Both the position numbers and the translations under genes were made by a program. Below the pieces are notes generated by a model that was not told the origin of the DNA, did not search any database, and worked only from the letters and a program-made list of their open reading frames with translations. Shown piece after piece: positions 28,155 to 46,284 of a stretch of 64,000 bases of DNA. This stretch comes from Vitrella brassicaformis CCMP3155 (lineage: Eukaryota; Protista; Chromerida), in NCBI GenBank assembly GCA_001179505.1, contig CDMY01000287.1:1-64000 (forward strand), written 5' to 3'. How positions within the stretch are numbered: the first letter of the stretch is position 1; each line of letters begins with the position of its first letter.

Positions 28155-30415
28155 ATGGCCTTCCGTCGCGCCCTTTTCACTCTTGCCGTCTTCATCCTCG
28201 CTGTGCACCAATGCTGCCAGGTACACAGTTGAAACGGGACGCAGTGCTTCCCCCTGTCTGTCGTGCGAACTTACAGGGTGCCGGACCAGGCAACCGCTCG
28301 CACAAGGGCCAGCCAGGCAACCACACACAAGACCACACACACAAGGGCCGGCCAGGCAACCACACACAGAAGGGCACGTGCACGTGTTGGGACGACAAAG
28401 AATCCGTGAGGGCCGACATCCACAGGGAGTTTGCCAGTGGCGGTGTGATTTGGGGACAGGAATCTGAATCCATCTCCGAGGGTCTGCTTGACAAGTTCGC
28501 ACGAGAACTGAGTTTCGATTTGGGTCGGTTCGGCACACCAGTGCCAGCTGTGGATAAGGAGACCATTCGCTGGCTCACAGACAGTAAGACCGTCCTACAG
28601 GGAGCCTTCCTCCTTCTGATCCTTTTGGTTTCTCAGATGCCCTCTCAGCGAGGAACTTCGTTGTTGACGACAAGCTGGTTCGCTGCGCTATCAGACAGCA
28701 CACAGGTCTCCATCTCCGTGCATCCATGTGTGCAGGTGTCCGTGGTGTATCGTCGTGCTTTATATCCGAAGGAGACTTGCAATCCCCGGTTTTGCTGGCC
28801 ACACGGATTTTCATGCAGCAAATGCGGATGTTCATCGCGAGGGTGCAGGCTTTCTAAGACCGACCAACCTTATGTGGGCTGGAAGATCGTCACGCACGGC
28901 GTGAGTCCTGCACAGCCATGCCGACACCCAGCCGCCTTCAAGTCGTGCCCAACGGACCCCGGCGACCGCTTCGTGGTCTTCCCGCCCAACCTTGACCCTT
29001 GGCGCGGCAGGGCGGTGGCCGATGCTACAAGCCTTGGCCCCTGGGAGGTGGTGTGTCTCATCACCCTCAACAACAATGACGGTCGGTTGATGGCTGAAGA
29101 GGAGGTCGCCATGATCTCTCACGGTCATAATAGTCGCGACCAACAGTTCATCACGTCGCTTCCAGAGGGAGTGTTTGCCGCCCGCAAAGCAATCAGCAAC
29201 TGGGAGCGCATGCGCATCTTCAAGCTGGGTGGAGACCGCCAGCCCATTGGCGGCCAGATCAGCTATGGTGACAAGGTGGCGGTGTGGAGCAAAGCATCGG
29301 GAAAGTGGTGGGCTGCTGAGCAGTGCAATGGCGGCGTCAACGCCAACAGGGAAACCATCGGTCCGTGGGAAACGTTCCTGTATACCAAGGGCGAGTGCAC
29401 GTGTTGGGACAACAAAGAATCCAAGAAAGCCGACATCGCCAGGGAGTTTGCCAGTGGCGGTGTGATTTGAGGACCGGTTTGGGGACCGGAACATTCAGAT
29501 TCCTCCTTTTCCGTCACTGAGGATCTGCTTGACGAGTTCGCACGAAAACTGAGTTTCGATTTGGGTCGGTTCGGCACACCAGTGCCAGCTGTGGATAAGG
29601 AGACCATTCGCTGGCTCACAGACAGTAAGACCGTCCTACAGGGAGCCTTCCTCCTCCTTCTGATCCTTTTGGTTTCTCAGATGTCGGCTCAGAGAGGGAC
29701 TTCGTTGTTGGCGACAAGCTGGTTCGCTGCGCTGTCAGAGAGCACAAAGGTCTCCATGTCCGTGCTTCCATGTGTGCAGGTGTCCGTGGTGTATCGTCGT
29801 GCTTCATATTCGAAGAAGACTTGCGAGTCCGAAAGGATTTGCTTGGGGTGCAGCAACTGCGGATGTTCATCGCTAGGGTGCAGGCTTTCCTCGAGCAACC
29901 AACCTTATGTGGGCTGGAAGATCGTCACGCACGGCGTGAGTCGTGCACAGCCATGCCGACACCCAGCCGCCTTCAAGTCGTGCCCAACGGACCCCGGCGA
30001 CCGCTTCGTGGTCTTCCCGCCCAACCTTGACCCTTGGCGCGGCAGGGCGGTGGCCGATGCTACAAGCCTTGGCCCCTGGGAGGTGGTGTGTCTCATCACC
30101 CTCAACAACAATGACGGTCGGTTGATGGCTGGAGAGGAGGTCGCTATGATCTCTCACGGTCATAATGGTCGCGACCAACAGTTCATCACGTCGCTTCCAG
30201 AGGGAGTGTTTGCCGCCCGCAAAGCAATCAGCAACTGGGAGCGCATGCGCATCTTCAAGCTGGGTGGAGACGGCCAGATCAGCTATGGTGACAAGGTGGC
30301 GGTGTGGAGCAAAGCGTCGGGAAAGTGGTGGGCTGCTGAGCAGTGCAATGGCGGCGTCAACGCCAACAGGGAAACCATCGGTCCGTGGGAGACGTTCAGG
30401 ATCCGATTCCTGTGA
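28155..30415 (+). CDS. Secreted protein with two tandem modules (Cys-rich segment plus fascin-like/actin-crosslinking beta-trefoil); single in-frame TGA at 29468-29470 between modules
   Basis: Signal peptide MAFRRALFTLAVFILAVHQCCQ | GAGPGN (phase-0 intron). Beta-trefoil-type repeats AVADATSLGPWEVV, VFAARKAISNWERM, VNANRETIGPWETF. Unit of about 1.02 kb repeated (about 28367-29386 and 29387-30400). Frame continuous except for one TGA. Confidence 0.7.
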
Positions 30416-31425: not shown

Positions 31426-32078
31426 TCACATTCGTCGGTTCTGCGACCGCTCCCATCTCATGACACACCTGCACACGCACACACACACACACAGCACGCA
31501 GCGCAGAGAAATAGCACGTTCATCGCGGCGTGAGTGGGGTTGGCACACACAAGGAAGGCTGTCTGTCTGACCTCCAAGCGACCAGCTGCACAACGTAGGC
31601 CACACACGCCGGCCCAAGCGTCGCCCAGAAAGCCGCGGCCGCCAGCATCTGGGGGTCCGTCAGGGCAGTCAGCGAGCGCACCACCAACCCTCTCCCAGCA
31701 GCATCCCTGATCGATCGAATGACACACACGCAGAGCAGCCGCAGCCGCATGTGTGTGTCTCTCTGTTGTGTGTGTCAGGTTCTCACCACCCACACACGCC
31801 GTGGGGGTAGAATGGCTGCATGGTGCCTTTGTTGGCGTCGAAGGGCAGCTGGGCGGGGCCGTTGGTCGCCAGACCGATCGCACAGGCGCTCATGGCCGAC
31901 AGGTACGGGCTCACCGCCTCACACACACCTGCACACACACGCGTGTGTGTGTGTGAGGCGTTGACTGATGCGCTTGTGTGTGTACCTCCGATTGCGAGTG
32001 CGACTGACCCCCAGACGACGACACGCCAGCGGGACTTGAGCAGCTGTATCTTCAACACCTGCGCCAACACACACACAC

Positions 32079-32109
<31 letters not shown>

Positions 32110-35100
32110 AGCAAAGGTGCGTGTGGCCGACTGACTGACCCCAGCGGCGCTCATTTTGACGTTGTCGAGCAGCAGGGTGCCCACCACCACCACCAGGGCA
32201 CACACATAGCTGCCCCGATCTGCCACCACACACACATATGATGACACACACCCCTCTCTATGTATATGCGTTTGACCGTCCCGGTGCGAGTGTGTGTGTA
32301 CCTCCCCCGGTGGCAGCGAGGTGCATTCCGAGTGCTCTCAGGATTGCGGGCGGCGGCACCAGCAGCGCCAGGCCGGTCACCGGCCACAACGACTTTTGAC
32401 GCATACGCGAGATCAGACCGAAGATGGCCATGGACACGACGGCCGCCAGCACGCCCGTGACACCCAGCACCACACCGACCGTTGAGGCCCCCTCACCCCC
32501 TGAACACACACACATGCGCTTCTTTGTGTTTTGTGTTCGTGTTTGTGGGTATTCCGTCACCAGAGGCATCGGCAGTCCCCGGCTCTCCCATGTCGTCGGT
32601 AGCCAGCCGTCTCAGCAATGAGTGCAGGGCCATCTGCTGGTGGTGGTGAGATGAAGCGCTCTCGGTGCTTGTGCCGGGCTCCTGAGGCATGGGTGTGGAG
32701 GTGGCGAGCATCAGCAGCCACGCCAGCCACAGCACAGAGGGGAACGACGACAGCGAGCTGAGCCACAAGCAACCAAACAGACAGACAGAGGAGATGTGTC
32801 TATGTGTGGGGGCGGGGCGGTTTGTCTGACTTGATGCAGTCTGCTGCAGCGATGGTCCAGAAGCATGTGGCTGAGGAGGGATGGCCGGCCTTTGGTGTGG
32901 CTGCTGGTGGCTGTGAGGCCTTGTGGCGCCTCTTCGAGCACAGTAAAGGCACGTCGAACGGCCTGCAAAGATGCCATGCGTGGACACACACGCACAGGTA
33001 TCTCATGGTGTGTGTGTGTGTGTGTACCACTCGACGCTGGGCAGCTTGGTCTCTCCGATCACCGGCGGGAGCCCCAGCAGCAGTGCAAGACCCACCAGAA
33101 ACAGCAGCACACTGCACACACATTCCCCCCCCCCCCCCCCCCCCCNNNNNNNNNNNNNNNNNNNNNNNNNNNNNNNNNNNNNNNNNNNNNNNNNNNNNNN
33201 NNNNNNNNNNNNNNNNNNNNNNNNNNNNNNNNNNNNNNNNNNNNNNNNNNNNNNNNNNNNNNNNNNNNNNNNNNNNNNNNNNNNNNNNNNNNNNNNNNNN
33301 NNNNNNNNNNNNNNNNNNNNNNNNNNNNNNNNNNNNNNNNNNNNNNNNNNNNNNNNNNNNNNNNNNNNNNNNNNNNNNNNNNNNNNNNNNNNNNNNNNNN
33401 NNNNNNNNNNNNNNNNNNNNNNNNNNNNNNNNNNNNNNNNNNNNNATTCCCCCCCCCCCCCCCCCCCCACACACACAGATCCGTATGTGTGTTTGACAGG
33501 TGGGGTGGTGGGTGTGGCTGCTCACCACATGACGCCCACAGACGAGAGCACAACCACACTGCTGGGCGCCAGGCCACCCCTGTTGCTGCTCATCGCTGGT
33601 GGTGATGGTGATGATGGGATGCCACCATCCTCGCGCAGGGTGGTTGTGGAACTGGCCAGGTCGGCTGCATCTGCCACAGCCCTTGTGAAGTTGAGGAGCA
33701 CCTTCCTGCTGGCGCCCGATAAGACGTCAGGCGAGCCGAGAGCCTGAACCGAGCGCCACACACACAGAGAGGGATGCAGGGGTGTGAGCATGTGGGAGGG
33801 GGGGGGGGAGGGCTACGTGTGCAGCCGTCTTGTTGCCGGTGTTGTTGCTCTTGTGGGCGACGTGCTTCCAGCCGGGGGGCAGCTTGCCTTGCAGCAGATC
33901 CATCACCTGTTACATGCAGCGCGCAGCTAGCTACCGGTGGGCTGGTGGGTGGGAGATGGGAGACGTGTGTCCATGATGCTTGCTGCTTACGTCTTGCGTG
34001 TGGCTCTGGCCTGGCGGCACCACTGGCATCGGCCCCACATCGGTAAAGGCAGATGGGGGCGCTGAACAGACGCATGACACACAGACACAGGAGTGGGGTG
34101 CGATTGGATGCGTTTGTGTGAGGGGGGGGGGGGGNNNNNNNNNNNNNNNNNNNNNNNNNNNNNNNNNNNNNNNNNNNNNNNNNNNNNNNNNNNNNNNNNN
34201 NNNNNNNNNNNNNNNNNNNNNNNNNNNNNNNNNNNNNNNNNNNNNNNNNNNNNNNNNNNNNNNNNNNNNNNNNNNNNNNNNNNNNNNNNNNNNNNNNNNN
34301 NNNNNNNNNNNNNNNNNNNNNNNNNNNNNNNNNNNNNNNNNNNNNNNNNNNNNNNNNNNNNNNNNNNNNNNNNNNNNNNNNNNNNNNNNNNNNNNNNNNN
34401 NNNNNNNNNNNNNNNNNNNNNNNNNNNNNNNNNNGGGGGGGGGGGGGCCTTTGCTGACTGGGCGATCCTGTGAGTGCGGCGAATATGATGACGTCCAGCA
34501 GGGCGTATGAGATGAGGTGCCGCACCGACTCACCCACCGCAGTACGGCCAGTGGCACACGACAGAGACCCTACACACATACACAGAGAGAGAGGGAGACA
34601 GAGAGAGGCGCATTCGTGTGCGTGGCCATCCCATCCACAGACCCATGCCCACCTTCAGGCATGTCCATGAAGTTGAATCCCAGAAAGATCGGGAAGCCTG
34701 TCGCAGCGAAGACCGAGTGGACGGTCGAGACCACCGCCAGACACACCAGCAGCAGACAAGGTGGGGAGGCGCCTGAAGTTGTGTCGCTGCTGGTGTGGAG
34801 GAGGTGTATGCCCGTGGCCGTTGCTGCCACGGCCAGTAGGGAAATCGCCTGAGAGACCGACACGTGCAGTTGTGTGTGCTGCCATCCATCCATCCAGCCA
34901 TTTGCCCACACACGCACCTGGGCCACCATCCCGGTGCAGAAGAGCTTGTTGACTTGAATGCGCCGGCTCGCCACAGCCCAGCCGAGCGAAGACACACCTG
35001 CCAGTCCAGCCAGCATCACACACACACACACACACACAGACACACAAAGACACCCACATGCGACGTGCGAAGCTTCTTTCCCTTCACTTTGTCATTCACC

Positions 35101-35482
35101 AACCGTAGCATAGCGCCCAGACAGAGAAGAGCACACACGGCAGCCACCCATTGCGGAAAAAGGCTGTGTACGTCGGAGACGGTGCTGCTGCTGGTGGTGT
35201 TGGTGTTAGTGGTGGTGGTGGGAAGGTGTGCTGTAAGGCCGAGACGGCCAGGGCGAAGATGATGTGCCCGGAGGCCGGGGCCAGGCAGTAGCCAAGCAGG
35301 ATCAGCCAGTTCCTGCACATCCATCCATCCATCCACATACACACACCGTTGGGCTGTCAACACCGACCTGATGGCGACTTCGCCGCCGAGTCCCTGCCAC
35401 GCCATTATGTGCACCAGCCACTGACGCATCCTGCTGTAGGAAGAGTCATGCTCGGTGCCTGCGTGTTCGTCAACTGACCACA

Positions 35483-35516
<34 letters not shown>

Positions 35517-37327
35517 CATAGAGGCGGGCGGTGTGTGTGTACCTGCCCTCTCTCTGTCTGGATGATGCTGTGGTTGAGGGCCCCCTCCAGAGGACAAGCC
35601 GAACTGGTAGAGTGCGTGCGCCTGCTTGACCACAGACGCCATCGTGACCTGCTTCTTCGTCATGACACTGGGGGAGGAGCCCTCCACACACACATGACGA
35701 TGGTCGTCACCTGCACACAATGTCCGTGTGGCCTTCGTGTGTGTGTGTCGGTATGTGTGGTCCCCTCACCGCCTTTGCTGTGTGTCCGTGGCCAGTTTTG
35801 CCGGAACCATCGCAACACGCCGAGCGGCCACGGCAGCCCAGAGACAGAGGACGGCCGCTCGGCTGCCTCATCGGGTAATGTCGTTCCGGCCATATCGCCA
35901 GCCCCGCTCTCAATATCCCCCTCGCCATCGAGATGCTCAATAGTCGCTGCCTCATCAGTGGGCGCCTGTGTGGTGCTCTCTGCCGGTGACGGTGAGGGGG
36001 AGGGCTGCACCTGCTCGAGGTGCTGGATAAGCAGCTCGTCCGTCACGCCCTCGGCGAAGACCCTCTCGTCCAAGTCCAGATTATCGAGACCTGGCGGCGC
36101 GTCATCGGCGGTGGTGCTGTCTTGCTGTGGTGGTCGGTGCGGGTCTTGTGGCTGTCGGGGAGATGGTGACAGCAGGGCGGGGGCAGAGCTGGTGTGCGGC
36201 ATCGGAATGGGAATCGGCACCTGACACACACACACACACACACACAGAGACACAGAGAGAGGGAGAGAGAGATGTGTGCCGGTGCTCCTGTGTCCCCACT
36301 GGTGCGTCGTCATCGAGCGGCCGTGGGGTGGTGTCCGCCGAGTGGTACCGATGCGCACGGACGGCCGACCTGCCATCATATCCACCCACACCCACTCTCA
36401 TAAATCCACACCCACCCATTCCCTCAGCTAGCTCACTTATAGAGGGCCGCCAGCCTGTGTTGCCAGGGGTACAGCGGGAACGACGTGGCCAGCGCCTCCT
36501 CGGCCATGCGCGACAGCTCGCTGTCGGACGCTAGCATGGCGCGGCGAATCGACGCTGACACACAGACACACACACACACACACAGACGCGGATGTTTGCT
36601 GGGGGATGTCCCTCTGTCCCTCTGTCTGTCTGTCTGTCTGTCTGTGCGACCTTGGAGCCCCGCTCGTATGTCGGCGTCCTCGACGGCCTCGCCCGTCTGG
36701 TCGCGAACAGGAAAGTAGAAACCGGGCACCTTCCCTGCAGACAGACAGATGCACAAGGAGGAAACGCTGTCTGGATGGATGGATGTTCGTGTGGGAGTGT
36801 CCTCACCGAGCCCACCAACGAGCGACGCCACAGCCACGCTGCCGCGCCACGCAAACTCCACATCGACATACCTGCACACACACACACAGTGGGGTGGGGG
36901 GCGGGGAGCTGTATGGTTGGTCGGCTACCCGAATGGCTCTGATCGTGAGGGCATGATGCAGAAGTCGGTGGCCCACTGCAGCGAGGGGGGCGGCCGCATG
37001 AACCGAGCCGCCACGTACAGACGACCCTCAAACGCACCAGAAGCCTGCAACCACACACACACACACACACAGAGCCGGGGGGGGAGTGTTCTCACACACA
37101 CGGATGCACACGCACGCCCGCAGAAATGCTCACCTTCAGGCTCTCCAGTTTTCTCCGCGCGTACTCGCCGTAGGCGTCGCCAACCGGGCCGATGCAGACC
37201 AGCTGTGTGTAGGGAAAGGTGAGCAGCATCCACCGCGCCACGTCGGCAATCAGGTCGATGCCCTTCTGGTGCACCCAACGGCCCACGAACACCCAGATCT
37301 TGGCGCGACGATTGACAACCAGCCCTG

Positions 37328-37361
<34 letters not shown>

Positions 37362-38182
37362 AGGGTGTGGGGGGGGGGCGGGGAGAGGGTGACACACCGA
37401 GGTCCTTCTGGGCCAGCTCTTTGTTCCTGGCCTTGAGAGCCATCAGACGGACGCGCGAAGGCTGTGGCTGCTGGCGGTCGTCAGCCGTCCACACCGGCCG
37501 CTCCTGACACATCACATGCCACAGGCACGTACAAAAGTCTCTCTGTGAGTGTGCTGTGCAGGTGAACTGAATGGATGCACTCACCGACTCAGGCACTGGA
37601 TTTGGGATGGCGTCGACCTTTGCCAGTGTGCGCAGCAGCGGCATGGTGGTCCACCTGCACGAGGGCGATTTGTGTGTGTGAGTGCGTGTGTGTGTGTGGC
37701 GGGGGCGTACAGCTCGTGTGCGTAAGGCGCCGACACGGCCGACACGCCGATGCCCCCCTGATACCGCCGGCAGTACCGCACCATCGCTGAAAGCATGTTG
37801 AAGCGACCTGGCCCCAGAAACAGACACACACACACATATGTGAGCATATACATCTCTCTCTCTCTCTCTCTCTCCGTGTGTGTGTCTGTGTTTGTGTGAC
37901 CGTCGTGGACGGCGAATGTGTGTATGGTCTTCCTGGGCAGCGCGAAGATGGCCTCGAGCTTCTCCAAGGCTTTGTCGTCCACCTGCTGGAAAATCTGCAG
38001 CCCCACACACACACACAGACACAGCACACAGACACAGACACACTGTTCCTGCACCCGTCTGCACAAACAAGTGCATCATTATATTGTTCTTACTTACCTC
38101 TCCTTGGTACTCTCCGTTGTGCAGGACGGCCATGCACGGCACCCGGCCGAATGGCCGGCAGTACAGAGGGGCCAGACCTGCA

Positions 38183-38217
<35 letters not shown>

Positions 38218-41200
38218 GGAGAGAGTTGCACAAGGGGAAGGACGATGTGTGTGAGTGAGGACGGGTACCAGAGTGGTAATCTGGGCAGTGGAAGACGTCA
38301 CACAGCTCGCTGTCAGGAGGAGGGACCTCTGCGACCTCTGCGACCTCTGTGTGCGCCGCCCCTGCCTCTGCTGCAGCACCTCTGATGTAAACCTGCACAC
38401 ACACACACACACACACAGAGAGAGAGAGGCAGCGCGGCACAGCAAGCGACTGACCTGCAAGAGCGCGCCAACACACTGGTTCCACATAGAGAAGAACGTC
38501 AGGGCACCGCGGGACGACAGCCCGCTGGGATACACAGCACCTCTCCTACACACACACACATACACCAGAGACAGGCAGAGAGAGAGGGAGGGATGACAAG
38601 AAACGGTTTGCTCACCTGCACATGGCGGAGAGGATCGGGTGCTCGCATCGGAGGTAGACGACGTGAGGCCGGTCCGGCTGCAAAGTGCTCGAGTCTGTCG
38701 GCAGTGCCACACACGCACACACAGACACAGACACACACACTCTGTCGGCAGTACATCTCTCTGTGTGTGTGCGTGTGTGCGTGTGTGCGTGTGTGTGTAT
38801 GTGTATGTGTGTGGAGCCGCCCACCTCTGGATGGCGTGGTGGTGCTCGGGGCGTCCGCGGCCGTGGCGTCGCTGTCACTTGCTGCATCGATCTCAAGAGC
38901 GATGTCTACTCAAGGACATACACACACACACACAGCGAGAGAGAGAGAGAGAGGACATCATCTCTGTGTGTCCCTCCCTCCCTCCCTCCCTCCCCTCCCT
39001 CTCTCCCTCCCTCTCGCTCACCTGTGCGCCTCTCCTTCTCTCTCTGTCTCCTCTCATATCGCCATATCATAACGGCGAGCACGCGGCCCTCCACACTGAC
39101 GTTGACCATGGGGCAGTGGGCGTCGGGCTGCCACCCACTGCCGTAGTCGACACCCCCGGCAGACGGGAAGGCGAAGACGATGTTGCCTGCACTCACACAC
39201 ACACAGAGAGAGAGAGGGTGGAGGGGGCGGAGGGGGGCTGAGAGGGTGAGAGGGGGAGGGGGCTCGGTATGTTCACCTGGGTGGTGTTGGGTCATGATGC
39301 CGATGACCTTGCCCAGCCCTCCCGCGTTGACCGACACGCCCTTCTCCGGGATGTGGTGCTCTGCACACACACACAAACACCCACGCACACACACACACAA
39401 TATCCCACCCATCCAACCATCCATCCATCCCTCCATGAGTACCAATGCCGCTGAGAAACACGCTGTGGCGCGTTACGGGCGGCATCGACGCCGGCCGGGC
39501 AGCTGACACCCACACACGCACACACGCACACACCCAAGCACACAGCCAATGTGGGTGTGTGCTTGTGTGGGGAGGTCACCGAGCTGTACCTCTTTCGTCG
39601 CAGCTCTTGACAGCACCCTCTCCAGACACAACAATCACGGGGGCCTTTTTGCGGCAGTGGGCCACCAGCAGAATCACGACGGGAATCAACACGTGGAAAC
39701 ACAGCCTGGCAATGCAATGCCGTCAGCCCCCCCACACACATATGGTGTGTGTGTGGAAGGGTGTGTGTGTGCAGGGTGCTTCACAGCTGCAGCTTACAGG
39801 AGCATGACGCCTGTTTTGGAGATGACGCTCGTCGACAGGTAGGCCGCAGAGGTGTGCAGGATCACGGCCGACTCCTCCCGCACAGTCATGTCTGTGTACC
39901 CCCCCAGACACACACACACAGACGACGTCCGTCCATGTGTGTGCATCAGCATCAATCGCCCACCCCCACCCCTCCCCCNNNNNNNNNNNNNNNNNNNNNN
40001 NNNNNNNNNNNNNNNNNNNNNNNNNNNNNNNNNNNNNNNNNNNNNNNNNNNNNNNNNNNNNNNNNNNNNNNNNNNNNNNNNNNNNNNNNNNNNNNNNNNN
40101 NNNNNNNNNNNNNNNNNNNNNNNNNNNNNNNNNNNNNNNNNNNNNNNNNNNNNNNNNNNNNNNNNNNNNNNNNNNNNNNNNNNNNNNNNNNNNNNNNNNN
40201 NNNNNNNNNNNNNNNNNNNNNNNNNNNNNNNNNNNNNNNNNNNNNNNNNNNNNNNNNNNNNNNNNNNNNNNNNNNNNNTCCCCCCCCCCCCCCCCACACA
40301 CACACACCTTTGATGCGCCCCTGCACATCGACATAAACCAGGGCATATGGCTTGCCGCACCCAAGAGAGCCCCGCCACCGAGCTAAAGCCAGGTCGCAAT
40401 ACACACCCTGCACACACACACACACACACACAGAGAGAGAGGGAGAGATGCTTCGGGGTGTGTGTGTGTGTGTGCACACCGGCGGCAGCTGTGTCTCGAA
40501 GGTGTAGTCCGTGGCGGGCTCCTGGCCGAAGTTGATCACCAGCCACCTGCAGAATGTCATGCGTGTGGCCCAGTGGGCGTCGTTGCCTGTGTGTCTTTGT
40601 GTGTGTGTGTGTGTGTGTGTAGGTATACCCTCTGTTCCACGGAAAGCGGTCGTTGCCGCGGCCAAATGAGAGGAGGTTCTGCTCACAGGGTGTGTGTGGA
40701 TGGATGGATGTGTGTGTGTGTGTGTGTGTGGATGGGGCGGCAAGCGTACCTTCTCTATGTCAGGTCTTCTGTGTCTGGGGTGTGCGGGGATGTACCGGTT
40801 TGTGTGCTCCAGCGCCACATAGTCCTTCAGCTTCTCACGCCACCCTGCACACACACGTACGTCTCGCTCTCCCTCTCTCCCTCTCTCTGTGTGTGTGTGT
40901 GTGTACCTGCCATGTTGCCAATCATGGGCAGCCTGTGCTCGCAGTTGAAGTGCAGCCCATCGTCGGACAGACTAGGGGTGGTGTCCCAATGACGCAGCCG
41001 AGACCTGCCAGCCACCCCACACACACACGTGCATGGTGCGTCTTTTGTGTGTGTGTGTGTGTGTGTGTGTTGGGAGCACTTCATCACCGAATGCTGTGCC
41101 AGTTCAGAGACCCGCCGGCAGTGTCGAGACGGTCGTAGTCGAAGCACAGCACCCGACGAGTGCCGCCTTTGCCCGTCCTCGGCGGCCCCACCCACCCCCT

Positions 41201-43970
41201 GGTCTCTTCGACACGGCCATCCGCCAGACGAATGTACTGCCGCGACCACTCGTAGGACGACAGCACCCTGCACACACAGAAGGAGAAGGACCTGTGTGTG
41301 TGTGTGTGTGTCTGTGGATGTGGATGTGGGTGTGGCTGTGGGGTGTGTGTGTGGTACCTGGGAGTGCCGTATGGCATTGCGAGGGTGAAGACGTTGGCCA
41401 GGGCCCAGAGGTTGGGGTGGTTGTAGGATGTCAGGGCGTCAAGCTGACACACACCCACACACACTCACAGCATTCGTTGTGTGTCTGCAGCAAAGGAATG
41501 AACGAACGGGCACCTCGCAAGAGTCGAGGGGCGTGTACGGCTCCTCCCAATGCTCCTCGACCTTCGACACGCCGCCACCACCTACACACACACACACACA
41601 CACACAGAGCTCACAATGGGTGTGTTGTGGGTGGATGGCTCCACGCTACACACACACTCACTCAGCGCGTTAGCCGGCTGTCTGAGCGCCATTTTGGCGA
41701 GCTTGGTCGACGGTGGCTCAGAGAAACCGATACCTAATTGGATGGATGGATGGCCCCAAACAACACAACACAACACCCTTATTGTAAGGATGGGCTGATC
41801 GCATACCTACCGAGTCGGATGCGGTTGAGCCCCGTCGTTGCGACTGTCTTGTGACCCAGGGCCGCCACATTGCCACCGATGGCAGTAGTACCACCAGCAG
41901 AGGTGTGGGTGCGGTTGGGCCTCACTGCATAGGCATCGGCAAGTGTGTCGGTCTCCAATATTGGCACCACCTGCACAGAGAGAGAGGGAGGGGGGGGGGA
42001 GAGAGAGTGCCCATCGCCCATTGCCCGTTGCCACACATCCATACACACACACACACACACACGGACCTCTCTGTCTCTCCACTTGCAGATAATCGGCGGC
42101 CTGGGCATAAACTGCAGCCGCTCATTGTCGTGGTTGGTCACAAACAGCAGCGCGCTCTCGTACGGCAGGAAATTGGCCCGCCCGGAGAAGGGCAGCATCG
42201 CCGGCGGCGAGAGGTACTGCGGCAGATACTTGAGCGGCGGGCACTCGGAGGGGTCCTGCCCCTGACAGACACACACATGGGGGAGGAGTTGCGTCCACCG
42301 TGCACCACACAAGGCACAGAACAGGCGCCCACAGACGACGCACCTGTGTGAGCCTGCTCCGGAAGCACAGCATCAAGCCGGTAATCCGCTCGCTCCAGTC
42401 GAAGAAGGTCACGTGGCCCAAGCGAGAGTAGTCGCTATACCGAAGACCAGCCTACACAGCCCCCCCACACACAGGCCAACCCTCCTCAGTGTGCAGAAAC
42501 AGACACACAGACAGAACAGACAGATAGACAGACAGACAGGCTCTCACACACACGCACGCACCTTCGGGCGAGGGTCAGACACCTCGAGCAAGAGCCTCGG
42601 GCGCGCCTTATCGGTGCAGGGGGGAAAGGCCACGCCAGCTCCCGTGCGAGCGACGATGTCGGCTGCCGGACGGACACACGCACATAGCACACAGACACAC
42701 ACGTGTGTGTCTGTGTCGAGGGGTGGGTGCGTGGGGGTGGGGGGGAGGGTGCACACCTCTAACAACGGGGGCGTTGGATGTGCAGTCGTCGAGCCCGAAA
42801 AGCTCCTCCAGGTCTTCGTCCCACATGTGCTTGGCTGACACACACACACACACACTCACACACACAGATGTCCCCCCCACGACACAGACAGCCTGTGGGT
42901 AGACGTACCAGCGTCAACACGGAAGCCGCTGATGCCGAGGTGCAGCAGCTCGCGAATCGCACGCCGCTGCAGAGACTGCACCTGCGACATCCACCAATCC
43001 GCAGACGCACACACACATATATATCGACGCACACACGCGTGTGCAGCCATACCTTGGGCGACGCTGTTCTCAGGTCCGGCAGCCCCAGGAGGCTGCAGTC
43101 TTTGATTTTCACCGGATCAATGTCACTCGGCGGGATGTAGTCGACACTGCCAAAGCAACAACAAAGGCCGTGAGGGCGTATGGCGCATCACCCCAACCAC
43201 GGTAGGTCCGCCCCGCCCACCTGCACTCGTGGAAGTCGTTCTCGGTCAGATTGAGGTCGGGGTAAGACAGCAGCGGCGCACAGGCGCGGATATCGGGGTT
43301 GTAGGCCTTCTGTTCTCGAGAGCACGCCGCTGTCTGCTGCTCCCCACTCCCACTCCCAACAGCAGCTGTGTCGCAGCACCGAAACGCCGCCAGGTTGTTG
43401 AGGACGATGTCGGCTATCACCTGTATGCCGACATCGGCGCATTCCTCGACGGTCCGTCTGAGGGCGGCCACATCGCCGCTGCGCGAAGTGAGGTTGTATG
43501 ACATAGGCTGGTACCTCTCCCACCTAAACACACACACACACACACACGCATTCAGAAGAGCGTCCTCTCCGTGTGTGTGCCACTACCATGGGTAGCTGAT
43601 GGCCTCGCCCGTCGCAGAGGGGATGCCCTCGACAGGCAGCAGCGACCGATGGCTGTGCACAGGCGACAGCTGACACACACCAAACCATATAGGGGACAGC
43701 GTCTTGGTCGTGTATTGGTTGTGTCTTGGTTGTGTTGCGTTGTGTCGTGTTGCGCACCTGCACGGCTTTCCAGCCGTCCTTTGCCAGCGTCGGGCACTCT
43801 GCTGCGATGTCGTCGTAGGGCCACTCAAACAGTTGCAGCACCGCCCCCTCCCAGTAGCACCACACAGGGCAGACACAGACACACAACCACAGCCACGCAC
43901 ACGACCACACACACACACACGGACACGCAGACGACCACAAAGCACCAGCTGCCACGGCGGCCACCTTCAT
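31426..43970 (-). CDS. AGS1: Alpha-glucan synthase-like multidomain membrane protein: GH13 alpha-amylase domain - TM - Ags1/Mok1-type GT5 synthase - Ser/Pro linker - multi-pass TM domain (many exons, three N-gaps in introns)
   Basis: Amylase motifs: LQLFEWPYDDIAAEC, AVQLSP, YPWWERYQPMSY, IADIVLNN, GFRVDAAKHM, LLEVSDP, FVTNHDNER, AMPYGTPRVLSSYEW...GWVGPP, CEHRLPMIGNM, LPPGVYCD. TM GVMLLLCFHVLIPVVILLVAHCRKK. AGS-type synthase motifs: VNAGGLGKVIGIM, FPSAGGVDY, FFSMWNQCVG, FHCPDYHSGLAPLY...LHNGEYQG, FVGRWVHQKGIDLIADV, LVCIGPVGDAYGEYA, MPSRSEPFGYVDVEFAWRG...VGGLGKVPGFYF, SFPLYPWQHRL. Then many hydrophobic exons to ...SQNRRM* at 31426. Exact start uncertain. Confidence 0.88.
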
Positions 43971-44474: not shown

Positions 44475-46284
44475 ATGCATCTGAAGGGGAGCGGCAACGA
44501 GACCAGCGACCGGCTGAGGGACCTCGCCACATCAGCCGTCCTGGTATGTGTGTACGTATGTCTGCAGGCAGAGAGAGAAAGAGAAAGTCATGGATGGATG
44601 GCATGGCATCAGCATTGCTGTCTGTCTGTCTGCGTGTGTTCAGGAGAAGGCCATTGAAGACCGCCTGAAAAAAGAAGAGAACAGAGGTAGGCCTACGCCG
44701 AACATACAGTCCCGCTTCACTCCTTAACGCGTCTGTGCCATCGATGGGTGCAGGTGCTGCCCAGAGTGACGCCGGTGTGGGGGGTGTCAAGCGGCAGGCA
44801 GACAGCGATGAAGGGGCGACAGATCACGGTGCGTTCGTGTCAGCACATGTCGGGCATTAGCTCGTGTGCGCATGGATGGATGGATGGATGGACCCATGCG
44901 TGTGTGTATGGCGTCCAGGCGACGATGCTGAGGACAGTGAGCTGAGCCGGCTGAGGGAGAGGCGCATACAGCAGATCAAGGTGAGCTCACACACACACCC
45001 GGTTGTTGGCGCGGGTCTAGATCGGTTGTTGGCGCGGGTCTAGATACATGTGTGTGTGTGTGTGTGCGCGTATGGATGGATGGCTGCAGGCAGCAGCGGC
45101 CGACAGGAAGAAGGAGAGCGAGATGGGCTATGGCGAGTACACGATGATCGACGAGGAGGACTTCCTCAACACCGTCACCAAGTGCAAGAGATGCGTAAGG
45201 ACAGACACACAGACAGACAGACAGACAGTGTGTTGGATTCATTGCCTGTCCGTGTGCAGGTCTGTCACTTCTTCCATCGGGAGTTTGAGCGGTGCAAGGT
45301 AAGGTGAGCCCCCTGACCGTGTGGCGACGTGCAATCACCGGTCCATTATCTGTGTGTGTGTGACTGTGCNNNNNNNNNNNNNNNNNNNNNNNNNNNNNNN
45401 NNNNNNNNNNNNNNNNNNNNNNNNNNNNNNNNNNNNNNNNNNNNNNNNNNNNNNNNNNNNNNNNNNNNNNNNNNNNNNNNNNNNNNNNNNNNNNNNNNNN
45501 NNNNNNNNNNNNNNNNNNNNNNNNNNNNNNNNNNNNNNNNNNNNNNNNNNNNNNNNNNNNNNNNNNNNNNNNNNNNNNNNNNNNNNNNNNNNNNNNNNNN
45601 NNNNNNNNNNNNNNNNNNNNNNNNNNNNNNNNNNNNNNNNNNNNNNNNNNNNNNNNNNNNNNNNNNNNNCCCCCCCCCCCACACACACAGATAATGGACC
45701 GGCATCTGTCGGTGCTCGCGCAGCAGTATGACAGAACCAGGTTCATCAAGTGAGCCAAACCGACACCACCCAGCGGTCCGTGCACACACATTCATCCATT
45801 CACACGCTTATACGTGTAGGATGGACGTCACGAAAGCCCCGTTCTTTGTGGCCAAGCTGGCCATTCGCACTCTGCCAACCGTGGTACAAACACGCGCAGC
45901 AGGGCGTCTGTGTGTGCACCCGAATGTGTGTGAATGTCTGTGTGAGCCGCTGCAGGTATTGTTCGTCGATGGCGTGGCTGTCCACCGCATTGTGGGCTTC
46001 GAAGAGCTCGGCGGTGCGTAGCGACACAAAAGAATGGCTGCTGGCTCCTTCGACCCAATGTGTGTTGGCTGTTGTGTGCAGGTGTGGACACATTCAGCTC
46101 TCGGCAGCTGGCCAAGATCATGCACAAACACCAAGTCATCACACAAAAGGCATGAAATGATTGTCCACATATACACCCTCCGATGGGTTGATTGGATGTA
46201 TGTCTGTCTGTCTGTCTGTGTCTGAGTGTGTGTCAGCTTGTGGGCGATGAGAGCGGGCGGTCCAATGGCGACGACGAGAACTGA
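44475..46284 (+). CDS. TXNDC9: Thioredoxin domain-containing protein 9 / phosducin-like protein 3, multi-exon
   Basis: ELSRLRERRIQQIK, GYGEYTMIDEEDFLNTVTKCKR-CVCHFFHREFERCKIMDRHLSVLAQQYDRTRFIK, APFFVAKLAIRTLPTV, FVDGVAVHRIVGFEELGG-VDTF. The last exon and stop are approximate. Confidence 0.88.

Follow-up and report, generated by a model that had tools for sequence, protein, structure and literature searches.

A putative alpha-glucan exporter gene with Ags-like module order and an animal-type amylase domain in a chromerid alga

The window that we analysed, a 64 kb stretch of Vitrella brassicaformis DNA, holds on its minus strand what is probably one expressed gene (whole coding span 31520..43970) for a membrane enzyme of several domains, with a type-I anchor and the layout of the fungal alpha-glucan synthases Ags1 and Mok1, which we propose to be an alpha-glucan exporter. 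The encoded protein of 2031 aa runs, in residues of our model, from a signal-like start through a GH13 amylase domain (19-548), a transmembrane (TM) segment and a GT5 synthase domain (605-1085) to a linker and a multi-TM tail. This order had been proposed in the first-pass annotation, and the spliced reading frame, hydropathy and profile matches bear it out within one gene. Since the gene encodes an amylase, an anchor, an Ags-type GT5 and a tail, the cell-wall alpha-glucan machine described from fungi appears to exist also, with another kind of amylase, in a chromerid-like alga and in dinoflagellates. Ags-type synthases are regarded as a fungal cell-wall speciality and are studied as virulence factors and antifungal targets; a well-supported alveolate sister family would alter the view of how this machine originated.

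A single spliced gene and its transcripts

All introns of the 53-exon model are GT-AG (the median length is 90 nt for exons and 83.5 nt for introns), and the exons join into one continuous open reading frame of 6096 coding nt, which supports the earlier claim of a single spliced gene on the minus strand. The ATG at 43970, the first of the open frame, coincides with the upper limit of the span originally noted, and the stop codon (31522-31520) falls some 95 nt short of its lower limit. Exon 1 (43917..43970, minus strand), whose donor is uncertain (43917 or 43956), carries the ATG and a signal-like N-terminus, MKVAAVAAGALWSSA, which, judged by hydrophobicity only, may be a signal peptide. The motifs quoted in the first-pass annotation were all found on the minus strand where it had placed them, and several are formed only by splicing (WWERYQP and, joined at the slash, GFRVDA/AKHM, YGTPR/VLSSY, DYHSG/LAPLY and GGLG/KVPGF).

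The model combines a manual, profile-anchored choice of junctions with exact-length constraints from an RNA contig, and about 10 of its junctions could be off by a few codons. Automatic gene-finder models kept in-frame introns and skipped GH13 exons, and were dropped. Pfam matched almost nothing on the raw stop-free stretches because the exons are so short, and these stretches were replaced by the spliced model. No second GT5 or GH13 copy was found anywhere in the 64 kb window, which rules out tandem copies within it as the origin of the GH13 domain.

Spliced RNA contigs with minus-strand GT..AG were found at the locus, correct splicing was recovered in two runs, and the visible RNA blocks cover 2066 of the 6096 coding nt. 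One RNA contig leads from an exon of the amylase C-domain through exon 39891-39798 into the TM exon and on into 26 nt of a further exon, and spliced RNA also connects the end of GT5 with the linker and the linker with the tail. Unlisted exons were fixed by the lengths and depths of RNA contigs. Collinear homology and the open frame place the body of GT5 (39590 to 36554) as well as the majority of GH13 junctions, with no visible RNA junction across that stretch or for most GH13 exons. The RNA block end at 36194 was discarded as an exon boundary; DNA contigs break off there too, which marks it as a masked repeat.

All three assembly gaps (unstranded runs of N) are intronic, two of them bridged by RNA contigs and the third closed by DNA contigs. 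The gap at 39979..40278 lies inside intron 40307-39892, which is GT..AG at its corrected boundaries, and an RNA contig joins 40371-40309 to 39891-39798. The gap at 34135..34434, inside intron 34458-34062, is spurious and sits at a poly-G tract, where DNA contigs (X2, X3) connect 34121 with 34435 through a 13-nt overlap in the G run. Near this tract, RNA depth per bin fits exons 34569-34459, 34061-33991 and 33906-33817 (109, 62 and 100 nt expected versus 111, 62 and 99 nt), and this three-exon solution rules out an exon crossing the gap. The gap at 33146..33445 is inside intron 33525-33112; an RNA contig runs from 33526 to 32962 with 83-84 unplaced nt between, which equals exon 33111-33028, and therefore the gap hides no coding sequence.

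Downstream of the amylase, a single TM segment, TM1 (GVMLLLCFHVLIPVVILLVAHC, followed by RKK; residues 560-582; 39651..39811, minus strand), is encoded in two exons, 39891-39798 and 39705-39590, and its hydropathy peaks at residues 561-579. Because of the RKK after TM1, we infer that the GT5 domain is cytosolic; the GH13 domain would lie on the extracellular or lumenal side. Beyond GT5, the Ser/Pro/acidic linker (residues 1086-1340; 35385..36356, minus strand) is RNA-supported: a 602-nt contig spans 36194-35791 and another 198 nt upstream, a 1938-nt contig continues downstream, and there is a unique 106-nt exon solution at 35473-35368.

The stretch behind TM1 is where two or more genes might have been merged into one model, namely one for an amylase, membrane-anchored or secreted (44.0-39.6 kb), and another for a GT5-MFS synthase (39.5-31.5 kb). 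Such a merger would agree with the closest homologues, which begin with TM-GT5 and carry their amylase at the opposite end, and with the fact that no visible RNA piece spans 39590 to 39462/39360. However, the TM exon ends in open frame at a GT donor, from which the RNA contig continues into the 26 further spliced letters; the next exon follows after only 127 nt and the first GT5 residues after 127-229 nt, too short a distance for a gene end, a new promoter and a start. The frame is also open across this junction, and homologues align TM1 directly into GT5, in unbroken HMMER alignments to proteins encoded by single transcripts, of window residues 560-1090 with 1131-1664 of P0018 and of 563-1085 with 33-563 of P0061. 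Within the window, moreover, there is no GT5 upstream and no GH13 downstream. A merger of separate genes is therefore highly improbable.

The synthase and amylase domains

The GT5 domain of this single gene (36357..39457, minus strand) is spread over 17 exons and is collinear with positions 82-557 of the family profile, with the motifs AGGLGKV, FHCPDYHSG, LHNGEYQG, FVGRWVHQKGIDLIAD, CIGPVGD, PSRSEPFGYVDVEFAW and GGLGKVPGF. Over the whole domain, the phmmer E values are 1e-96 to 1e-139 for dinoflagellate proteins and about 1e-64 for fungal Ags. Identity falls from 39-42% with the dinoflagellate proteins through 30-31% with fungal Ags to 22-23% with bacterial GlgA. The window and fungal Ags have in common the motifs FVGRW..QKGIDLIAD, C[IV]GPV.D.YG and PSR.EPFG.V.VEF, as well as a 14-residue deletion that separates both from GlgA. 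In the GT5 tree, whose outgroup consists of six bacterial GlgA with plant and eukaryotic GT5 synthases left out, GlgA stands apart from a group made up of fungal Ags on one side and the alveolates with the window on the other (SH-aLRT 100, 92 and 96). The alveolate clade comprises 61 rows including the window (SH-aLRT 96), and the tree does not assign the window to any one of its five sub-lineages. Identities, motifs, the deletion and the tree with its six GlgA outgroup sequences thus uphold an Ags-type rather than a bacterial GlgA-type synthase, as had been suspected from the motifs.

The GH13 ectodomain (39845..43847, minus strand; 16 exons) gives collinear profile matches through domains A, B and C. 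Against the animal-type amylase profile it scores E 1.1e-77 and 248 bits over positions 30-472 of 475, and its best PDB matches are amylases of fish, pig, human, insect and Pseudoalteromonas. The window's GH13 has no match to a profile of GH13 domains from fungal Ags, and the PDB neighbours of the fungal domain are of the TVAII, neopullulanase and Taka types, unlike those of the window. Profile scores and differing neighbours thus agree with the first-pass annotation that the ectodomain is of the animal/bacterial chloride-type and is not a fungal Ags GH13. In CAZy, chloride-dependent animal-type amylases belong to GH13_24/15/32 and the fungal Ags ectodomain to GH13_22; by its PDB neighbours, the window's domain is probably of the former group.

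The domain looks catalytically intact as far as sequence can tell, in that Asp231 (42915-42913), Glu277 (42585-42583) and Asp350 (42129-42127) are present within GFRVDA, LLLEV and NHDNE. In region I, the histidine expected in DxxxNH is replaced by Asn119 (DIVLNNL versus DaviNHm), a substitution that may weaken or change the activity of GH13. In the GH13 tree, the window is placed among free-standing amylases of the Halomonas/Actinomycetota type. Its nearest free-standing relative, P0181, is 37% identical to it and itself matches the Pseudoalteromonas haloplanktis amylase AHA at E 1e-137. A common origin with the dinoflagellate GH13 domains is not rejected by the AU test (p 0.31). Of the two routes named in the first-pass annotation, either domain replacement or an independent fusion may have brought the amylase into the protein.

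In both trees the window sits on a long branch (1.5 changes per column for GT5 and 2.86 for GH13). Together with the His-to-Asn change in region I and the several insertions of the GH13 domain relative to the profiles, this could be read as the mark of a copy that is decaying or has lost its function, with domains that have ceased to cooperate. We give that reading very little credence, as the frame stays intact through all 53 exons (6.1 kb), both runs yielded RNA with correct splicing, and neither the catalytic triad of GH13 nor any Ags-type motif of GT5 has been lost. The branch lengths are partly due to model errors and imperfect junctions, and relaxed constraint is possible as well.

The multi-TM tail and a proposed path for the glucan

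The tail (residues 1341-2015; 31571..35384, minus strand), through eight exons of which an RNA contig runs, has at least 10 hydrophobic segments by hydropathy and is taken to be a transporter-like domain of roughly 12 helices, with an MFS fold predicted via the structure model of a homologue. It matches a profile of dinoflagellate tails (about 500 columns) at E 2.5e-23 by hmmsearch, in three collinear stretches, and at a probability of 98.9% by hhalign (E 1.8e-17, 392 columns). The AF2 model of the tail of one such homologue (P0055:624-1150, pLDDT 91) has an MFS fold, and in a Foldseek search of that model against Swiss-Prot, ranks 1, 2, 3 and 7 are the tails of Schizosaccharomyces pombe Ags1, Mok11, Mok13 and Mok12, with TM scores of 0.57-0.62 that are only just above those of generic MFS transporters. 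Profile-profile comparison of the window's tail with fungal Ags tails found no similarity (probability under 1%), and sequence homology between the two was dropped. Pfam gave nothing significant on the tails (MFS_1 at E 0.2); a Polarella relative has a precomputed MFS_1 match. Of the Ags-type multi-TM tail that had been claimed, the multi-TM character therefore holds and likeness to the fungal tails in sequence does not, and a possible link in fold passes through the homologue's model. Sister paralogues in the family carry an Acyl_transf_3 domain in place of the tail.

In the alpha-glucan exporter that we favour, and by analogy with Ags1, the cytosolic GT5 would polymerise alpha-glucan from a nucleotide sugar, the MFS-like tail would move the chain across the membrane, and the ecto-amylase would cut or transglycosylate alpha-1,4 stretches and so join or trim chains in an extracellular matrix or wall (PMC5753165). 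The glucan could be alpha-1,3- or alpha-1,4-linked, and the part in a cyst or sporangial wall that the first-pass annotation put forward is conjectural.

The same parts might instead make a storage glucan such as starch or amylopectin, with the cytosolic GT5 elongating an alpha-1,4 glucan at the membrane and the amylase and tail in another or regulatory role. GT5 is the starch/glycogen synthase family, and the characterised animal-type amylases are alpha-1,4-specific. The GT5 domain would face the cytosol, the site of chromerid starch (bioRxiv 10.64898/2026.09.25.754361), and over-expression of the SYN domain of S. pombe Ags1 leads to accumulation of alpha-1,4-glucan (PMC5753165). By contrast, the fusion to a transporter fold and an extracytosolic GH13, in three arrangements across Myzozoa, argues for export, and a survey of starch pathways in Myzozoa assigns chromerid starch synthesis to a eukaryotic UDP-Glc GT5 and omits the window's protein. 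We consider a storage role unlikely.

If a glucan is exported, it need not end up in a wall: the product could be a soluble alpha-glucan, an oligosaccharide or mucilage, or the enzyme could work inside the cell, for example at the membranes of alveoli or vesicles. MFS folds mostly carry small solutes, the Acyl_transf_3 domain of the sister paralogues hints at varied chemistry, and we found no report of a wall alpha-glucan for chromerids or dinoflagellates in the literature searched. On the other hand, Ags1/Mok of fungi, the sole relatives that have been characterised, use this module logic to produce alpha-1,3-glucan for the wall (PMC5753165), and we rate a non-wall product or an internal site as slightly less probable still than a storage role.

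Myzozoan relatives and comparison with known systems

The architecture is not peculiar to chromerids, as might have been supposed, because dinoflagellates possess a large homologous family, already auto-annotated as mok11/mok14 or ‘alpha-1,3-glucan synthase’. An exhaustive protein search with an intron-laden stretch of 649 aa as query gave 20 weak matches, which sufficed to seed this family. The gene is a member of a myzozoan family whose GT5 is sister to that of fungal Ags and in which a GT5-MFS core is combined with varied GH13 domains in varied positions; its own GT5 falls inside the alveolate clade and is followed by the conserved tail. Searches of the literature, of incomplete coverage, yielded no paper describing a dinoflagellate or myzozoan Ags-like family and nothing relevant on Ags, mok or alpha-glucan synthase in dinoflagellates, alveolates or Chromera.

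Two types of dinoflagellate proteins were compared with the window. Type I members (GH13-TM-GT5-MFS; P0005 of Polykrikos kofoidii, and also P0032-P0042 and P0018) have the window's domain order on single transcripts, with the TM about 45 residues before the start of GT5 and 39-42% identity in GT5. Their GH13 is Taka-amylase-like (PDB 6sao, 6xsj, 2guy/2taa) and scores only 14 bits against that of the window; their tail is homologous to the type A tail (99.8%), and its direct comparison with the window's tail is not significant. Type A members (GT5-MFS-GH13; Effrenium P0055, Durusdinium P0052, Cladocopium P0053/P0056 and Symbiodinium ‘mok11’ P0059 and ‘mok14’ P0060) are the best overall matches of the window (E 1e-122 to 1e-139), and all three of their modules (animal-type GH13, GT5 and MFS-like tail) are homologous to its own. 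Their order, however, is circularly permuted, TM-GT5-MFS-GH13 versus GH13-TM-GT5-MFS in the window, and the window's GH13 sits elsewhere in the tree, a separation on which the AU test does not insist. TM1 of the window aligns with the TM at the N-terminus of these permuted proteins, and the permutation may accordingly have arisen by tandem duplication and fusion.

From this distribution we tentatively suggest that Myzozoa may hold ancient Ags-type alpha-glucan exporters, sister to the fungal ones, in which an amylase was recruited at least twice (Taka-type and animal-type) and the core was permuted, and that an extracellular alpha-glucan might have gone unrecognised in their walls, cysts or thecae. 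If this is true, an unsought alpha-glucan polymer would be expected in the coccoid or cyst walls of chromerids or in the coverings of dinoflagellates, including coral symbionts, whose genomes have many copies of the Ags-like family. With one GT5-transporter core, three GH13 types and two positions, the family is a natural experiment, and its variety of GH13 domains bears on the role of the extracellular amylase domain, a question still open in fungi.

Compared with known systems, the synthase belongs to the same GT-B GT5 fold family as GlgA and plant starch synthases, and GGL, R..QKG and PSR.EP.G are recognisable in both. GlgA is, however, separated from the window by a very long, fully supported branch (100) at 22-23% identity, and is without the Ags-type deletion and without fusion to a TM or GH13. 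The chloride-dependent animal-type amylases (pig and human pancreatic, Tenebrio and AHA) have the same A, B and C domains end to end, and the window also retains regions II, III and IV together with CEHR and GPP, whereas its domain forms part of a fusion with a TM, a synthase and a transporter-like module and differs in the region I Asn, the insertions and a very long branch. Fungal Ags1 consists of a signal peptide, an extracellular GH13, one TM, the cytosolic GT5 ‘SYN’, a Ser-rich stretch and a multi-TM domain (PMC5753165), and in Ags1/Mok1 the order of modules is identical to that of the window. The GT5 of the fungal proteins is the sister group of the alveolate clade but only about 31% identical to the window's, their GH13 is of another subfamily, and they are longer, at about 2300-2500 aa versus 2031 aa.

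Gene model and transcript continuity

The region consists of intron-rich eukaryotic DNA, whose minus-strand translation yields short coding stretches with (CA/GT)n-rich spacers between them, and all of the synthase and amylase motifs quoted in the first-pass annotation were found on that strand. The raw stop-free stretches gave just one weak Pfam match (Glycos_transf_1) and were too short for Pfam; therefore, a spliced model was built. It was anchored on tblastn matches of homologues, two custom profile HMMs (from 18 full-length dinoflagellate relatives and 69 free-standing amylases, respectively), and spliced RNA contigs, with frame-compatible GT..AG pairs adjoining the anchors chosen as junctions. 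The resulting gene, on the minus strand, begins at 43970, where its frame has its first ATG, and ends with the stop codon at 31522-31520; it comprises 53 exons, with every intron GT-AG, in a single open frame of 2031 aa (median exon 90 nt, median intron 83.5 nt). Exon 2 (43847-43758), the transmembrane (TM) exon (39705-39590) with the two that follow it (39462-39418 and 39360-39277), and the last exon (31706-31520) all lie on the minus strand. About 10 junctions may move by a few codons (among them 43917/43956, 42757 to 42638, 42344 to 42216, 39462/39450, 39418 to 39360, 39022 to 38908, 38879 to 38540, 37585 to 37470, and 31986 to 31928), and the domain-level conclusions are independent of them.

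Assembly gaps inside the gene were checked first. The gap at 39979-40278, inside intron 40307-39892, is crossed by a 300-nt RNA contig of sequencing run X1 that contains 40371-40309, 39891-39798, 39705-39590, and 26 letters of a further exon; because this contig joins the flanking exons, the message is continuous and in frame over the gap. The gap at 34135-34434 (intron 34458-34062) is spurious, as DNA contigs of runs X2 and X3 link 34121 directly with 34435 via a 13-nt G run, the two sides overlapping by 13 G. The gap at 33146-33445 (intron 33525-33112) hides no exon: the 83-84 letters of a 1938-nt X1 RNA contig left unplaced there equal the length of exon 33111-33028. Poly-G/poly-C runs flank these three 300-N gaps as well as a fourth at 45370-45669, and those other than 34135-34434 may be homopolymer breaks of a similar kind. 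At two positions a single letter differs between the window and the contigs of some runs, namely 32223 (C>T, runs X1 and X3) and 42980 (A>C, run X4); strain or allele differences are the probable cause.

The RNA contigs also bear on whether the modules belong to one transcript. The 300-nt contig connects the TM exon with the amylase C-domain, and a 602-nt X1 contig spans 36194-35791 and extends a further 198 nt upstream, as far as the last GT5 exons. The 1938-nt contig joins 35706-35543, 35311-35102, 34847-34652, 33742-33526, 32963-32831, 32757-32560, and 32498-32302, and its intervening stretches of 107, 79, 272, and 83 nt correspond, respectively, to a unique 106-nt exon (35473-35368), a unique 80-nt exon (34997-34918), three exons whose lengths match the depth per 200-nt bin, and the 84-nt exon 33111-33028. 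Toward the 3' end, a contig of run X8 joins 32386-32302 with 32219-32138 and continues for 378 nt more. All boundaries in the RNA contigs are minus-strand GT..AG after shifts of 1-2 nt; these junctions were seen outside 39590-36554 and outside most of the GH13 domain, where exons were placed by anchors. The evidence for TM-to-GT5 continuity in one gene is indirect but strong: the X1 contig exits the TM exon spliced with the frame open, the distance from the TM exon to the next exon is 127 nt, and HMMER alignments to homologues on single transcripts pass from TM1 into GT5 without a break. No second GT5 or GH13 sequence was found in the 64 kb window, which excludes an artefact of tandem copies.

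The block end at 36194 was considered as an exon boundary and rejected, because dispersed short repeats account for block ends there and elsewhere. In each run, contigs and false joints pile up by the hundreds at these repeats (39409-39450, 34873-34906, 35316-35338, 36868-36898, 38548-38593, 42499-42541, and 43899-43926), among which is (ATGG)n, translated as GWMDGWMD. In addition, (CA/GT)n of at least four units occurs in 43 of the 52 introns, often right at splice sites (e.g., donors 35542, 32301, 33027, and 40906; acceptors ending GTGCAG or TGTCAG), where the sequence reads GTACACACAC... and ...GTGTGCAG; this striking intron signature looks genome-wide. Just past the 3' end of the gene, on the opposite strand, 29561-30415 (+) holds a 284-aa stop-free stretch with repeated GPWE.[FV] (GPWEVVC, GPWETFR), for which no Pfam family was matched.

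The Ags-type synthase and its dinoflagellate relatives

Residues 605-1085 are collinear with the GT5 domain of the family, sharing 39-42% identity with dinoflagellate proteins, 30-31% with fungal alpha-1,3-glucan synthases (Ags), and 22-23% with the glycogen synthases (GlgA) of E. coli and Paenibacillus. Common to this domain and fungal Ags are the motifs FVGRW..QKGIDLIAD, C[IV]GPV.D.YG, PSR.EPFG.V.VEF, and GGLG..PG[FW], the last with a 14-residue deletion that GlgA lacks. In a tree of 74 rows (IQ-TREE, PMSF model, quick search, SH-aLRT support only), with six bacterial GlgA from plasmid records as the outgroup, GlgA fell outside (support 100), and the alveolate sequences (92/89) formed the sister group of fungal Ags (100); 61 of the alveolate rows, the window sequence included, made up one clade (96), the place of the window sequence among its five sub-lineages not being fixed. 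The motifs, the deletion, and the tree position relative to these six GlgA thus bear out the earlier reading of the synthase as Ags-type. PDB matches of the family GT5 were limited to glycogen and starch synthases (E 1e-9 or weaker), and no Ags structure is deposited in the PDB.

The named relatives are dinoflagellates without exception: Symbiodinium ('mok11', 'mok14'), Cladocopium (one with the UniRef name 'Alpha-1,3-glucan synthase'), Durusdinium, Effrenium, Prorocentrum, Polarella, Polykrikos, and Amphidinium. Type I proteins are arranged GH13-TM-GT5-tail with a Taka-amylase-like GH13, as in Polykrikos P0005, a complete ORF on a Trinity transcript. Type A proteins, which include most Symbiodiniaceae copies, follow the order TM-GT5-tail-GH13, their C-terminal GH13 being animal-type. 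A small third group combines GT5 with an Acyl_transf_3 domain; in P0082, P0090, and P0110 (Symbiodinium 'mok14' and a JGI protein), GT5 is fused to a multi-TM Acyl_transf_3 (PF01757) in place of the MFS-like tail, which suggests an acylated glucan or another export route. The window protein has the module order of type I but an animal-type GH13. Its best overall matches are to type A, with all three modules alike in permuted order.

The architecture is real, but it is less singular than the first-pass annotation supposed, since a dinoflagellate family is present in public protein sets, solely under automatic names.

The amylase ectodomain and the membrane tail

Residues 19-548 matched a profile of free-standing amylases over positions 30-472 of 475 (E 1.1e-77), gave no match to a fungal Ags GH13 profile, and scored just 14 bits against the type I GH13. 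Single GH13 exons matched fish, pig, human, insect, and Pseudoalteromonas amylases in the PDB, unlike fungal Ags GH13, whose neighbours are TVAII, neopullulanase, and Taka-type enzymes. These profile results and differing PDB neighbours uphold the claim that the ectodomain is animal-type and distinct from the fungal Ags GH13. Among free-standing amylases, P0181 is the closest to the ectodomain (37% identity); it in turn aligns with Pseudoalteromonas AHA at E 1e-137 and with animal amylases at ~1e-120. The ectodomain has the catalytic residues Asp231, Glu277, and Asp350, and its region I has Asn119 where His is usual. Also present are an Arg (GFRVDA), an Asn (TNHD), and a second Arg (PRVLSSY), which we take to be the chloride-binding residues of animal-type amylases (pig amylase numbering). 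Some dinoflagellate animal-type amylases of 650-970 aa (P0135, P0136, P0138, P0142-P0144, and P0148) additionally contain fascin/FRG1-like and ricin-type lectin domains (PF06268, PF06229, PF00652, and PF14200; precomputed).

In the GH13 tree, the window sequence has a very long branch and groups with free-standing amylases of the Halomonas and Actinomycetota type (support 97), apart from the type A GH13; an AU test did not reject its grouping with the dinoflagellate clade (p 0.31). The window TM1 aligns with the N-terminal TM of type A, and, as far as the alignments indicate, the permuted modules together with this match are what a putative history of tandem duplication, fusion, and trimming would leave behind. 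The GH13 arrangement may reflect replacement, permutation, or independent fusion.

Hydropathy indicates TM1 plus at least 10 segments within residues 1341-2015. The tail matched a dinoflagellate tail profile of ~500 columns (hmmsearch E 2.5e-23) and the type A tail (hhalign 98.9%), and type A and type I tails matched each other (hhalign 99.8%), so that by sequence comparison it is homologous to the conserved tail across the dinoflagellate family. Pfam matched no family on the tail, and profile-profile comparison with fungal Ags tails gave no similarity. The fold was taken from a homologue, P0055 (residues 624-1150, 45-row alignment), standing in for the window tail, and the model is all-helical (pLDDT 91.1, pTM 0.89). 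In a Foldseek search of Swiss-Prot, the C-terminal TM domains of S. pombe Ags1, Mok11, and Mok13 took the top three ranks and that of Mok12 the seventh (TM 0.57-0.62), with ordinary MFS transporters close behind; PDB matches were VGLUT2, SV2A, and SPNS2. The tail is thus modeled as an MFS-fold domain, like the prediction for the fungal Ags tail, and common descent of the two is plausible.

Comparison with the fungal Ags1 model

A literature search, incomplete in coverage, turned up no account of an Ags, mok, or alpha-glucan synthase from dinoflagellates, alveolates, or Chromera, and a survey of myzozoan alpha-glucan metabolism from 2026 is silent on such a protein, on these GH13 subfamilies, and on the cell wall (bioRxiv 10.64898/2026.09.25.754361). 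The finding matters to cell-wall, CAZyme, and alveolate biologists.

In the model for fungal Ags1, cytosolic GT5 starts from an alpha-1,4 primer to build a chain, which then leaves through the multi-TM domain, and extracellular GH13 transglycosylates two chains (PMC5753165). All three modules are present in the window protein, with the same predicted sidedness (a signal-like start and RKK after TM1), and on this basis we take over the division of labour of Ags1, which most likely is the same here. By analogy with Ags1, the cytosolic GT5 would build the glucan chain, the MFS-like tail would export it, perhaps to a wall, cyst, sporangium, mucilage, or internal compartment, and the GH13 domain outside, with its Asn119, would either hydrolyse the chains or transglycosylate them.
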